Shown: positions 43,201-52,200 of the stretch, piece after piece
Layout of the letters: each line of letters opens with the position of its first letter
How positions within the stretch are numbered: position 1 is the first letter of the stretch
Source: Macrostomum lignano
Taxonomy: Eukaryota
Direction: 5' to 3'
Assembly: GCA_002269645.1 (NCBI GenBank)
Contig: NIVC01001600.1
Coordinates: 62,001 to 126,000, forward strand
DNA length: 64,000 bases
Made by a program: the position numbers and the translations under genes
The notes under the pieces: model-generated
Database searches by the model: none
What the model was told of the DNA's origin: nothing
Seen by the model: the letters and a program-made list of their open reading frames with translations, nothing else

Positions 43201-46200
43201 CTGGCACTCAGCGATATTGTCCTGAGCCAGCTCGGCCTGAGCTCGGGCATTCCTCATCTGCTCCAGCAGCTGATCCCAGTCAGGCCCAGCAGTCTGACCA
43301 GCCCGTTCGAACCTGGCCCGCTTAGCATTAAGCTGGTCAAGGCGCCGGGCCAGTTTCTCCCTCTCGTGCACCCAGTTCTCCATGTCCGCAGCCAGATGGC
43401 CGACAGTCTGGCGTCGGCCTACAGTGGTGGACAGAGCTCGCTCGATGCTGTCCCAGCGGCCTTTCATCGCCCTGGCCGACAGCTGCTGCTGCTGACCGGC
43501 GGGCGAAGCGGCGGCCGCGGCGGCGCGACGACGGGTCGCAGCGAGGCCAGCTGGACCTGAGGCAGTCGCCGAGTTTGTCGCTGAAGCTGCCGCCGCTGTG
43601 GCTGACGAATTCGAGGATGGGGTGCCGGCCGACACTAGGCGAGTTGGACGACGTCGGAGTGACTGAACCTAAGAGAGTGACAATGATAGGAATGACAATT
43701 TTTGACAATGATGAAATGGTAACGGAAATAGTAATGATTACAATAAGTTATAATGACGAGTGACATTAATAAGGGTAGCAATAGATGAGAGTGACATTGA
43801 AAGGAGCGACAATGATAAGAGTGACAATTGAGGAGAGTGACATTGATAAGAGTGACATTGATAAGAGTGACATTGATAAGAGTGACATTGATAAGAGTGA
43901 CATTGATAAGAGTGACAATGATAAGAGCGACAATCGATGAGATTTACAATAAGTGAGAGTGACAATGAGTGAGAGTGACAATGAGTGAGAGTGACAATGA
44001 TGAGAGTGACAATGAGTTAGAGTGACAATGAGTGAGAGTGACAATGAGTGGGAGTGACAATGAGTGAGAGTGACAATGAGAGTGACAATGAGTGAGAGTG
44101 ACAATGAGAGTGCCAATGAGTGAGAGTGACAATGAGAGTGACAATGAGTGAGAGTGACAATGAGTGAGAGTGACAACGAGTGAGAGTGACAATGAGTGAG
44201 AGTGACAATGAGTGAGAGTGACAATGAGTGAGAGTGACAATGAGTGAGAGTGACAATGAGTGAGAGTGACAATGAGTGAGAGTGACAATGAGCGAGTGAC
44301 AACGGCAGTCTCACCTCCTCCTGTTTCCTGCGCAGCACCTGTTCAGTCTGCTTGGCCCTCTCCTGCAGGCTGCGCACCTGACCTTCAGCCTGGCGCTTCT
44401 CCTTGCGCAGCTGGTGCATCTCGCGCACGTGCCTCTGCTCGGCAGCTTGAGTCCGTTTAGATTCGTCGCGAAGTTTCTGCATTAGAGTCACTTTGGTTCG
44501 TTTGAGATCGTCTAGCTCGGAGTGCATCCGATGCAGCTCGGCCTCCTTCTTGGCCTGATTGGCCAGTAGCCGGTTGTGCTGGGCAGAGGCCTTCTTCAGC
44601 TTGCCCACCTCCTCCTGGCGGGGCAGTGGGTGAAATTGGCAATTCACTTTTTGCTTTGTAATTAATACTTCACTCTTAAAGGTACACTAATTAGATTACC
44701 TAAAATAATTATCTAACTAAGGCGAACTAAATCAAAGTAAATCCAACTTAATCCTTACTGAGTTTAAGTCTAAGGAAATCTAACTAAATTTAGCTAAATC
44801 CAACTAATTCTGACTTAATCTAACAAAATCCAACTAAATTCAACTAACTCTAACTACATATAACTAAACTAAACTAAATCAATCTAAATCTAACTAAATC
44901 CTACTAATCCTAACTTAATATAACTAAATCAACCTAAACCAATCTAAATCTAACTAAATCCAACGAAATCCAACCAATTCTAACTAAAGATAACTAAATC
45001 TAACTAATAAATCCTACTAATTCTAACCAAACATACATAACTCAAACTAAATCCAGCTAAATACTAACTCTAACAAAATCTAATTATACAGTAAAAGTGA
45101 CATATCAAGTATCGAACTGAAAATAGGCAAAATAGGCCTTCAAAACAATGGCATCGCACCTGCAGACTCTGCAGCTTATTCTGATACTCCTGCTGCACCC
45201 GGCGCACTTTCTCTTCGCCGCTGGATTCAAGCAGCTCCAAATTTTGCAACACCCGATCTCGCTCAGCTTCGGTCTCTTTAATTCTGGCCTGCAAGTTTAG
45301 CAGCTGCTTCTCGTAGTGATCTCGGACAGCTCTCAGCTGACGCTGTTTAGTCTCGATCTCCGTGATGAGGCGCTGCTTCTGTGAGATCTCCCGCTGAAGG
45401 TCGGCCAGGGAAGCATCGAGGTAGCTGCCGTTCTGCTCCGTCTCGTTCTCTGTAGGATTTGGGTTTCCGTTTTGGGGATAGGCGGTTGTTTGTTGTCTTT
45501 GATGGTTGAATTGCTGCTCAAGGTGGGTACATTGTTGCTCATGATGGGTAGGTTTCTGTTCATGATGGGTAGGTTTTATTTCCTGATGGGTAGATTTCTG
45601 TTCATGATGGGTAGGTTTATGTTCATGATGGGTAGGTTTTATTTCCTGATGGGTAGATTTCTGTTCATGATGGGTAGGTTTTATTTCCTGATGGGTAGAT
45701 TTCTGTTCATGATGGGTAGGTTTCTGTTCATGATGGGTCGGTTTCTGTTCATGATGGGTAGGTTTCTGTTCATGATGGGTAGGTTTCTGTTCATGATGGA
45801 TAGGTTTCTGTTCATGATGGGTAGATTTCTGTTCATGATGGGTAGGTTTCTGTTCATGATGGGTAGATTTCTGTTCATGATGGGTAGATTTCTGTTCATG
45901 ATGGGTAGATTTCTGTTCATGATGGGTAGATTTCTGTTCATGATGGGTAGATTGTGTACATGATGGGTGGATTGTGTACATGATGGGTAGATTTCTGTTC
46001 ATGATGGGTACATTTCTGTTCATGATATGTAGATTTCTGTTCATGATGGGTAGGTTTCTGTTCATGATGGGTAGGTTTCTGTTCATGATGGGTAGGTTTC
46101 TGTTCATGATGGGTAGATTTCTGTTCATGATGGGTAGATTTCGGTTCATGATGGGTAGGTTTCTGTTCATGATGGGTAGATTTCTGTTCATGATGGGTAG

Positions 46201-49200: not shown

Positions 49201-52200
49201 AAGATAGGTCACGTGATAAAATCTACTGACAAGAGAGGTCACGTGATAAAATCTAGTGGACAAGATAAATCACATGATGAAATCTACCATGCGATAGGTC
49301 ATGAGATAAAACCTACTGACAAGATAGGTCACGTGATCAAATCTAATAACAGGACAGGTCACGTGACAAACCCATACGCAGATCACGCGAATATCAGTTA
49401 CTAATACACAATACTAATATTAATACACAATAAGCACACCTGTAACAGTCAGCGCATCTCCTCACCTGTGGTCCAATATAGCAGAAGCTGCCCGCAGTCA
49501 TCTGACCGTACTGGGTGACCCCCAATGCGAACAGTCTCTCGTAGCCAGCCGCAGTTGAGTAGTTCGGCACCATCATACCGTTGGTGACAATCATCCTTGG
49601 CGACTCCGGGCCGCTAGGAAACAGACCCATAGGATGGCCGCTGTGCAGTGTTAGCGTACTCTGCTCGGTCAGCTCGGCTAGATACCGCATAGCAACCCAA
49701 AATTGGGCCCAATTAGAGAACACCTGACCATTGCCGCCATACGTGACAAGCTCTTCGGGGAATTGAGCCACTGCCGGGTCTAAATTATTGCAGATCATTA
49801 GCATAATGACGCGACCAGCCAAGCTCTTGCCCGGATACAGCTGCACAGGGTAGGCCCTAATGGGGAACCTGGGCTTGAACCGGTACATATAAATATGCCC
49901 GTATTTGGTCAGCTCGGCGGCAAACTCGCCAGCCAGAAGGCTGTGCAGCTCGGCTGGGAAATAGCGCAGCGCGTTGCGTACGGCCAGGCGTTTGTCCCGA
50001 CGGTTCAGACGGTTGCCACGGCGGACTGGAGCATGGGGCAGGCTTGGGTCGGGCTCGTATGGAGGCGGCAGCGGTGACAGTGGCAGACCATCAGCTAGAC
50101 AAGACAGATGCCGATCGTCAACGGAAGACTCCGCCTCTTTCGTAGTTGACATTTTGTTGCTGTGCTGCTTGTGTTTCCGCTTTTCCAGCGCAGCAATTCA
50201 GATTATATTGTGTATATATGCGTGTATGAATATGCAACGCAGGGGACAGAGAGAGGAGACACGCAGAAGAGAGTGAATAAGATTAGATCGTAGAAGCTTT
50301 TATTAAATCCGACAAACACACCAGACCCCCTCCGCACATTTGCTACCCTGGACTGGGGCATTGGGTAAGACAGGCACGCGATCCAAACCATGTGTTTTTG
50401 GCTAAAGTCAAGACCTGCCCTCTGTGCAGCGGCGTGTGCATTTCTGCTTCTGTCGATCGATCATTATCGGAATCGATTATTTAATGCCCCCCGTTCAACT
50501 GACAACACGAGGAGAAACAATGCACGCGCCGCGTTGTTTTTCTAATAGAAAGTTGAAGGGTAAACGGCTGGAGCAACTTGACTGTAATTAAGTAATAATA
50601 ATGCTTCGTCAGCTAATTAGTGCCGAATGCTTTCTGCACTCGACGACAAATAAAGATTAATAAGCGAAAATCATCTTGCATATTGAGTAGACGGCGGGAG
50701 TACCTATTCCGATATATATGCCTCGTCAGCTAATTAGTACAACAAAAAAGTACATCTGCCTCACCCTCGGATTCTTCGCCATCCTCGGAGTCTTCTAGAC
50801 CTTCAACGTCGCTTCCAGCTTCTTCGTCGCTTCCTCCTCCGGCGACAGCGGCGCCGCCCGCAACATCCACCGCAGTTGACGCGCTAACGACGGATGTCCT
50901 GCCAGAGTCCTTAGCAACGCCTGACAACGGAAATGAAATAGACGCCGCACTGACCGTCATAGACGAGTCCATGCCCATTAGAGTCGAATCGAATGTTGTT
51001 GACGAAAACTCGTCGCTATTCGGCGTCTCTGGAAAATCCGAAGCCGAGAAAGCCACAGACCGATTGGTATGACCGCCTGCACCTGCGGAGGTGCCCGAAC
51101 CCGACGCGGCTGATGCGCGCTGACGATCTCGCTGGCGTTGCAGCAGAGAAACTGTGGCTTCAGCTTCGGCTAGGCGAGTTCGCAGATCCTCCATTTCGGT
51201 GGTAAGGCGGTTCAGAGTCAGCTCCAGGTCTTCGTCTTCGTTGAAGGTTGCTAAAATTTGGGAATTTACATTTTTGTAACTTTTCTCTACTAATAGTAGA
51301 CGAAATGCGCATTATTGTATTTTTTAGTGTGGGTGGGGTAAGTTTGCAGTCTTATTCTATAAGTAGACACCCTGACTCGATACCCCTCAACTTTGAATCA
51401 TTCCCAGGAACCTCGATATCTCTGGCTTTTGAGTCATTCACGGAAACCTTGATACCCCTCAACTTTAAGTCATTCACGGGAATCTTGATACCCCTTACCT
51501 TTGAGTCATTCACGGGAACTTCGATACCCCTTGACAGTTAACGCTCAGGTGAGTTTAACAAGCTCATTAGTCACTAAAGCCATGAACCCCCAAACAGCTT
51601 ACGATCCATCTGCCGCAGCCTGCTCTGAGCAACTTCGCAATCGGTGAGCAGCACTGCATTCCTGGCCTTTATACTTTCCAACGTCGATTGCAGGACTTTG
51701 ATTCTGTCACGCAGTTTCTCATTCTCAGCTTGCAGCATGCTGTTCTCGGAGTGCAGATCGCTGCAGGCCTCGCTGCCGTCTGCCAGCACCACTCGCTTGC
51801 CCTGCTCAAGTGGGGTTGAAGTGCGCGGATTGATATTGGCATCTGACTCGATGATTTACCCATCTGACTCATTATCTACCCATCTGACTCATTGATCTAC
51901 CCATCTGACTCATTATCTACTCATCTGACTCATTGATCTACCCATCTGACTCATCGATCTACCCATCTGACTCACTGACCTACCCATCTGACTCACTGAC
52001 CTACCCATTTGACTCACTGACCTATCCATGTGACTCACTGACCTATTCATGTGACTCACTGACCTATTCATGTGACTCACTGACCTATTCATGTGACTCA
52101 CTGACCTATTCATGTGACTCACTGACCTATTCATGTGACTCACTGACCTATTCATGTGACTCACTGACCTATCCATGTGATTCACTGACCTATCCATGTG

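Follow-up and report, generated by a model that had tools for sequence, protein, structure and literature searches.

How can two unrelated genes both be expressed when one of them lies, complete and on the same strand, inside an intron of the other? The question is raised by a stretch of 64,000 nucleotides (nt) of the Macrostomum lignano genome (contig NIVC01001600.1, positions 62,001 to 126,000; hereafter the window). An earlier reading of these letters, made without database searches and here called the sequence-only reading, had placed an intact three-exon urocanase gene (UROC1) within a single intron of a kinesin gene (KIF21), in the same orientation. The present analysis bears this out with exactly the coordinates that had been proposed, and the nesting of UROC1 in KIF21 intron 9 is confirmed as genuine at every coordinate. 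The arrangement is probably a lineage-specific pair of host and nested gene on one strand, in which UROC1 would form a compact unit within the intron, with its own start and its own transcription.

A Complete Urocanase Gene within Intron 9 of KIF21

The guest gene consists of three coding exons on the minus strand that together encode a protein of 723 amino acids without an internal stop (table 1). Both introns are of the GT-AG type, with the donors CAG/GTGAGG and CAG/GTAAGA and the acceptors TTCAG/G and CGCAG/G (a slash marks the splice junction), and an in-frame stop 15 codons 5' of the ATG means that the open reading frame (ORF) cannot be extended further upstream within exon 1. The protein covers the Pfam domains Urocanase_N (positions 1-127 of 127), the Rossmann-like Urocanase (1-209 of 209) and Urocanase_C (1-191 of 196) with E values from 1e-50 to 1e-79. 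Furthermore, residues 16-709 align to the solved urocanate hydratase 6uek (E = 2e-248), and the NAD-binding glycine-rich stretch and other blocks of that enzyme, HNGGGTGWG among them, are kept. Judged by these matches, the guest is a complete urocanate hydratase (UROC1/HutU) gene. Its protein is 99% identical to the M. lignano UniRef entry A0A1I8I9S7, followed by matches of about 60% identity from many animal phyla, which marks the window as nuclear DNA of this free-living flatworm, and no second M. lignano urocanase cluster was found among the best 120 matches.

The host gene was modeled as a chain of exons with a long public model as a guide, under the requirement of GT-AG sites and an open frame. 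The resulting model extends from the ATG at 59784 to the stop at 28136 and contains 19 coding exons encoding 1666 amino acids. Exons 14 and 15 of this model form one exon in the GenBank protein PAA66885.1, which gives the 18 coding exons that the sequence-only reading had counted. A single polypeptide displays the canonical KIF21 order of a motor, KIF21-specific helical domains and a C-terminal WD40 region (PF00225, PF23204, PF25764, PF23203, and PF00400), with Pfam matches to Kinesin (amino acids 18-373), KIF21A_2nd, KIF21A_4th (626-804), KIF21A (894-1048), and WD40. All of the best database matches are KIF21 or Klp31E orthologs. A comparison with shark KIF21A shows 59% identity in the motor and neck and 34% in the stalk; the two proteins are collinear on either side of the junction of exons 9 and 10, and a low-complexity acidic spacer of similar length in both separates the two aligned blocks.

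The two genes meet in host intron 9 (45450..50764, 5315 nt, minus strand), which is flanked by exon boundaries that are both in phase 1. The 3' end of exon 9 at 50765 reads ...TCCGAGG/GTGAGGCA and the 5' end of exon 10 at 45449 reads ...AATCCTACAG/AGAACG, the acceptor being rather purine-rich. The UROC1 coding sequence (CDS; 50152-47135) lies wholly between these two sites (50764-45450) on the same strand and shares no exon sequence with the host. At the protein level, the match to KIF21A_4th crosses the exon 9/10 junction, which falls at amino acids 635/636. A scan for Rfam families in and around the host intron gave no match at E <= 0.1.

Two tandem arrays accompany the guest. The 31-nt array in UROC1 intron 1 contains 11.4 copies of its unit and varies in length between genome copies, and eight of the nine copies in the window of the E-box type palindrome TCACGTGA are located inside it (49024-49370), where 0.75 are expected by chance. 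The second array, of 21-nt units, lies between the guest and exon 10. The reading frame of exon 10 stays open for about 330 codons upstream of the acceptor and through this array; since the period of 21 nt is divisible by three, several frames, that of exon 10 included, contain no stop within the array.

The Arrangement Is Shared by Three Copies of the Locus

Two further contigs of the same assembly (GCA_002269645.1, Mlig_3_7), NIVC01000695.1 (L001, at about 101-130 kb) and NIVC01001522.1 (L007, at about 109-147 kb), align collinearly with the window; the identity varies by segment, roughly within 87-100%, and neither contig is identical to the window. The exon 9 donor and the exon 10 acceptor are the same in both, and an intact UROC1 of 723 amino acids lies between them. 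Intron 9 is longer than in the window, at 5708 nt (L001) and 7090 nt (L007), mainly because the tandem arrays differ in length (the 21-nt array is about 0.85 kb long in the former and about 2.2 kb in the latter).

These copies bear directly on the possibility of a misassembly, raised by the sequence-only reading itself, in which a urocanase segment would have been misplaced into the kinesin locus. The genome is repeat-rich, M. lignano is described as a hidden polyploid (PMC10468722), and the window contains an assembly gap, a run of N at 27105-27815. However, the window, NIVC01000695.1 and NIVC01001522.1 are distinct in sequence, and their arrangement is the same to the base except for the repeat lengths; independent older gene models also connect exon 9 to UROC1, and the gap is located outside both genes, about 300 nt past the KIF21 stop. 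An assembly artifact is thus barely conceivable as the explanation.

The GenBank annotation of L007 contains a full-length KIF21 (PAA66885.1, BOX15_Mlig032694g1, 1757 amino acids) in which exon 9 is joined in phase to exon 10, as had been proposed for the window. The junction reads ...EDSE/ENETEQ..., and exons 1-9 and 10-18 are combined in one CDS from which the guest is spliced out; the concern that the two sets of exons might never occur in the same transcript finds no support in this model. The splice sites of the window are identical to those of L007, suggesting that the window copy is likewise spliced across the guest. In L001, the urocanase is annotated on its own (PAA78301.1, BOX15_Mlig022809g1, 723 amino acids), and its transcript cluster, Mlig022809.g1, differs from that of the kinesin pieces. 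Protein searches with M. lignano UROC1 and with the exon 9-10 junction returned no Logan or RNA-derived contigs; the search with the junction region gave two matches in total, low-complexity words having probably filled the candidate list.

Alternatively, KIF21 could have undergone gene fission when UROC1 arrived, leaving exons 1-9 as a motor-only gene and exons 10-18 as a tail gene with its own expression, so that exons 9 and 10 would not normally be joined. The annotation of L001 points in this direction, with a separate C-terminal kinesin piece of 646 amino acids (PAA78300.1) that begins at the first methionine of exon 11 and with no CDS over exons 7-9. In conflict with a fission, PAA66885.1 joins both halves, the donor and the acceptor are intact in all three copies, and the joined protein of 1666 amino acids is collinear with KIF21A on either side of the junction. 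Furthermore, exon 10 starts in phase 1 and no methionine precedes exon 11, yet all differences between the copies in exon 10 are synonymous. Based on these observations, a fission of the host is very unlikely.

The comparison of codons extends to both genes. In UROC1, the numbers of synonymous and non-synonymous codon differences are 12:2 between the window and L001, 16:7 between the window and L007, and 12:7 between L001 and L007, at a very low overall divergence. KIF21 exons 8-11 show 10 synonymous codon differences and 1 non-synonymous difference between copies. The predominance of silent changes agrees with two functional genes that are under constraint.

Table 1. Coordinates of the nested gene, its host and the candidate signals in the window
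Feature	Position	Strand	Remarks
UROC1 exon 1 (coding part)	49466..50152	-	ATG at 50152; donor CAG/GTGAGG
UROC1 intron 1	48831..49465	-	635 nt; holds the 31-nt tandem array 49024-49370
UROC1 exon 2	48352..48830	-	
UROC1 intron 2	48141..48351	-	211 nt
UROC1 exon 3 (coding part)	47135..48140	-	Stop TGA included
KIF21 (kinesin-4 family) ortholog, host gene	28136..59784	-	GT-AG exon chain, single open frame
KIF21 exon 9	50765..51250	-	Phase 1 end; donor G/GTGAGG, kept in L001 and L007
KIF21 exon 10	45160..45449	-	Phase 1 start after CTACAG/; encodes a conserved helix (...ERDRVLQNL)
TTGCAG acceptor, likely spliced leader (SL) trans-splice site of the host	59792..59797	-	YTNCAG match, 7 nt upstream of the KIF21 ATG
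AATAAA hexamer	50299..50304	-	About 150 nt before the start codon of UROC1; also in L001 and L007
Pyrimidine-rich tract	50232-50280	-	Between AATAAA and TATATA; kept in three copies
TATATA, candidate core promoter of the guest	50213..50218	-	66 nt upstream of the UROC1 ATG; kept in L001 and L007; a consensus match
Cryptic AG/A acceptor in UROC1 codon 6	50136..50138	-	Chimeric models fuse KIF21 exon 9 here
AATAAATAAA, candidate poly(A) signal of UROC1	46747..46756	-	First AATAAA, about 380 nt past the stop
Tandem array of 21-nt units, 42.8 copies	45510..46405	.	Between the guest 3' end and KIF21 exon 10

Expression of the Nested Gene and of Its Host

According to the sequence-only reading, motor and enzyme may be expressed in a mutually exclusive or tissue-specific manner, or the two genes may be transcribed together and separated by processing. 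The intron sequence between exon 9 and the UROC1 ATG contains an AATAAA hexamer, a pyrimidine-rich tract and a TATATA element (table 1), followed by an acceptor-like site, CAG/CAACAAAATG, whose CAG lies 8 nt before the ATG and which is kept in all three copies. UROC1 probably has a TATA-type core promoter of its own, as the TATATA element suggests, and the guest mRNA would then arise from separate initiation within intron 9. When the host is transcribed, the polymerase would read through the poly(A) signal of UROC1, and during splicing the two strong donor/acceptor pairs of the guest would be ignored and the whole guest removed together with intron 9. Because a poly(A) signal would have to be read through and internal splice pairs skipped, some interference or mis-splicing is to be expected.

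Several points weigh against this explanation. The promoter, the 5' end and the poly(A) site of UROC1 are all consensus matches. That PAA66885.1 and PAA78301.1 derive from RNA-seq data is inferred from their locus tags, which mirror the names of a published genome-guided transcriptome, and from the methods of that study (PMC5730564). The kinesin annotation of L001 (1-10213) is fragmentary, with exons 7-9 left out of any CDS, and evidence for a full-length host transcript is not present for every copy. Finally, the guest might itself be trans-spliced, since the trans-acceptor motif of M. lignano, YTNCAG, is found at only about 44% of the published trans-splice sites (9551/21,754; PMC8629364) and CAG/CAACAAAATG is located so close to the ATG.

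SL trans-splicing is widespread in M. lignano (PMC5730564; PMC8629364), and the host itself is likely to be subject to it. The 5' end of KIF21 reads TTGCAG/ACAAAAAATG (window 59785-59797; L007 2990-3010), and the partial CDS of PAA66885.1 starts 1 nt past this site in L007. A YTNCAG-type site at this distance from the ATG, together with the start of the CDS at that position, indicates that KIF21 is probably SL trans-spliced.

This biology lends credibility to the main rival explanation, an operon-like route of expression, in which UROC1 would have no promoter of its own. SL trans-splicing close before the ATG, together with polyadenylation at the AATAAA of the guest, would cut UROC1 out of the KIF21 pre-mRNA. 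A given pre-mRNA would supply either the UROC1 mRNA (perhaps together with a truncated, motor-only kinesin mRNA whose end is the AATAAA at 50299-50304) or, where removal of intron 9 comes first, full-length KIF21. The AATAAA, the pyrimidine tract and CAG/CAACAAAATG occur in this order in three copies and resemble an intercistronic region, the published modal spacing within operons is about 100 nt, and the CAG/CAACAAAATG of the guest is very similar to the CAG/ACAAAAAATG of the host. The kinesin fragments of L001 are also the expected output if the TBONE pipeline had cut one long unit at signals of the guest. However, no YTNCAG motif occurs within 400 nt of the UROC1 ATG, and about 55 nt, the TATA-like element among them, separate the end of the pyrimidine tract from the first AG. 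Furthermore, UROC1 and the kinesin pieces carry different cluster names and are not the g1 and g2 of a single unit, and a full-length host model exists in PAA66885.1. An operon-like origin of the UROC1 mRNA is accordingly rather unlikely.

The same signals could serve a further scheme, in which intron 9 acts as a processing switch between an operon mode that yields a motor-only kinesin mRNA and a UROC1 mRNA and an intron mode that yields full-length KIF21. In the operon mode, the transcript would be cleaved at the AATAAA that precedes UROC1 by 150 nt, and the SL would be added at CAG/CAACAAAATG. Such a switch is unlikely; if it were true, the expression of enzyme and motor would be coupled at initiation and mutually exclusive for each transcript.

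Chimeric Records in Public Databases

A separate gene in the host intron, rather than an additional set of host exons, is also relevant for three public records (UniProt A0A1I8I9S7 and A0A1I8II38, UniParc UPI0007A312EF) that describe in-frame chimeras of kinesin and urocanase and that we take to be predictions from an older annotation. The chimeric models enter the guest at a cryptic acceptor in codon 6 (table 1), and UPI0007A312EF (3102 amino acids, kinesin-urocanase-kinesin) also joins a GT within UROC1 exon 3 to the exon 10 acceptor. Taken at face value, these three models with in-frame joins would mean that the UROC1 exons serve as internal exons of KIF21 and that fusion proteins are made. 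The AG at 50137 is preceded by a purine-rich stretch and has no pyrimidine tract, a gene predictor that is forced to hold one frame across a same-strand guest picks such sites, and the GenBank models keep UROC1 and KIF21 separate. Real fusion proteins are highly improbable, and because the acceptor lacks a pyrimidine tract, the chimeras are most likely prediction artifacts caused by the guest on the same strand.

Same-strand nesting explains several faulty records at this locus, both the kinesin-urocanase chimeras and the tail fragment of 646 amino acids in one GenBank copy. The main value of the result lies in the annotation: UROC1 and KIF21 should be curated as separate and complete genes. 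The fragments in L001 also fit a pipeline by which one long transcriptional unit would be split at guest signals or at repeats.

Two additional exons of UPI0007A312EF upstream of the guest (53609-53791 and 52813-53058, minus strand) are absent from both PAA66885.1 and the KIF21 orthologs and were not accepted into the host model. Both are in phase 0 and could be false calls or cassette exons.

Lineage Distribution and Origin of the Nesting

UROC1 was not found within a kinesin gene in the trematodes Paragonimus westermani and Calicophoron daubneyi, the brachiopod Lingula anatina or the coral Orbicella faveolata, and in the limpet Lottia no gene is called inside KIF21, the matching intron included. 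No Macrostomum-like orthologs from closer relatives surfaced in the searches, so that the comparison covers distant animals only. Judged against these two trematodes, brachiopod, coral and limpet, the nesting is lineage-specific.

The position of the host intron offers a hint of the order of events. In Lottia KIF21, 8 codons separate a phase-1 intron from the conserved helix LAELTCEI downstream of it, and intron 9 of M. lignano KIF21, also in phase 1, is located 14 codons before LADLQREI. An intron of the same phase at nearly the same place makes it plausible that the host intron is old and that the guest arrived later, although the comparison is suggestive only, as the acidic region aligns poorly. 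Most likely, UROC1 would have moved into a pre-existing KIF21 intron in the Macrostomum lineage.

The structure of the guest differs from that of its orthologs. UROC1 has two introns in M. lignano, at least 16 (about 17) in Lingula and at least 6 that could be mapped in each trematode. Neither of the two positions matches an intron of the coral, the brachiopod or the two trematodes. In Paragonimus and the coral, no intron interrupts the coding sequence at the site of intron 1 (between Q229 and G230), and in Lingula this site falls between two introns close by. The site of intron 2 (in R389) is near, but not at, introns of the trematodes, and the nearest Lingula intron is 7 codons upstream (this region is unmapped in the coral). 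With far fewer introns than its orthologs, unshared intron positions and an unrelated host, UROC1 resembles an intronic retrogene. In contrast to retrogenes, it contains two spliceosomal introns, both GT-AG, and no parental multi-intron copy was found among the best 120 matches; a classification as retrogene was rejected for these reasons. UROC1 may have been retroposed and have gained its introns later.

The coral locus showed a neighborhood of its own. In Orbicella faveolata (positions 1-1001 of segment L006, from MZGG01000005.1), the gene adjacent to UROC1, in divergent orientation, has an aromatic-amino-acid lyase domain (PF00221, histidine ammonia-lyase family), so that the enzymes for the first and second steps of histidine breakdown may be neighbors in this species.

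Comparison with Known Nested Genes and Operons

A vesicular acetylcholine transporter gene lies in the first intron of the choline acetyltransferase gene at the cholinergic locus, known as unc-17/cha-1 in Caenorhabditis elegans. This locus shares with UROC1/KIF21 the placement of a gene in an intron on the same strand, and both of its mRNAs can come from one primary transcript. In contrast to the pair described here, the cholinergic genes share a 5' exon, belong to one pathway and are conserved across phyla, whereas UROC1 and KIF21 have unrelated functions, share no evident exon and are not paired in this way in the other animals examined.

The sequence-only reading had stated that nested genes are more often antisense to their hosts. 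This holds for Drosophila, in which 71% of the nested genes are antisense to the host and 29% share its strand, the same-strand guests having few introns (PMC3814207). For mouse and human the statement needs to be weakened, as the two orientations are nearly equal with a slight bias toward the opposite strand (PMC11694760). Same-strand intronic nesting is therefore a documented and fairly common arrangement, of which UROC1/KIF21 is a new case. The literature searched, supplementary files included, contained no mention of UROC1, KIF21 or their two transcript identifiers for Macrostomum.

The pair agrees with other same-strand nested pairs of animals in that a complete gene lies in one intron of an unrelated gene without exon overlap and that a guest with few introns is combined with a long host gene and a long containing intron; the low intron count of UROC1 fits the trend reported for Drosophila (PMC3814207). 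It differs from the fly guests, which are typically young, testis-biased duplicates, in that UROC1 is an old enzyme gene of the housekeeping type and, according to the searches, the only copy in M. lignano. It also differs from the surveyed pairs in that the SL trans-splicing of M. lignano adds a possible route of expression. The SL operons of M. lignano and C. elegans (PMC8629364; PMC5730564) resemble the locus in the common strand, in the short distance from AATAAA to ATG and in belonging to an organism that resolves polycistronic precursors by trans-splicing. In such operons, however, the genes follow one another in succession, whereas here the exons of KIF21 resume after UROC1, and the trans-splice motif was not found at the guest. 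Overall, the locus, which occurs in three genome copies, is one more clean example of a same-strand guest with several exons in an animal that employs SL trans-splicing, and it does not open a new class of mechanism.

Other Features of the Window

The window contains many tandem arrays and transposon remnants. An ORF of 237 amino acids with a GIY-YIG nuclease domain (39788-40498, minus strand) is located on the strand of the host in KIF21 intron 13 (6.2 kb) and is probably a mobile-element remnant. Further mobile-element remnants lie 3' of the kinesin gene at 395-1309, 4061-4958, and 8514-8909 on the plus strand and at 24368-24961 on the minus strand. Their content includes an endonuclease/reverse-transcriptase fragment, an integrase (zinc-binding and core domains), a fragment of a type-B DNA polymerase, and an ORF with a THAP domain.

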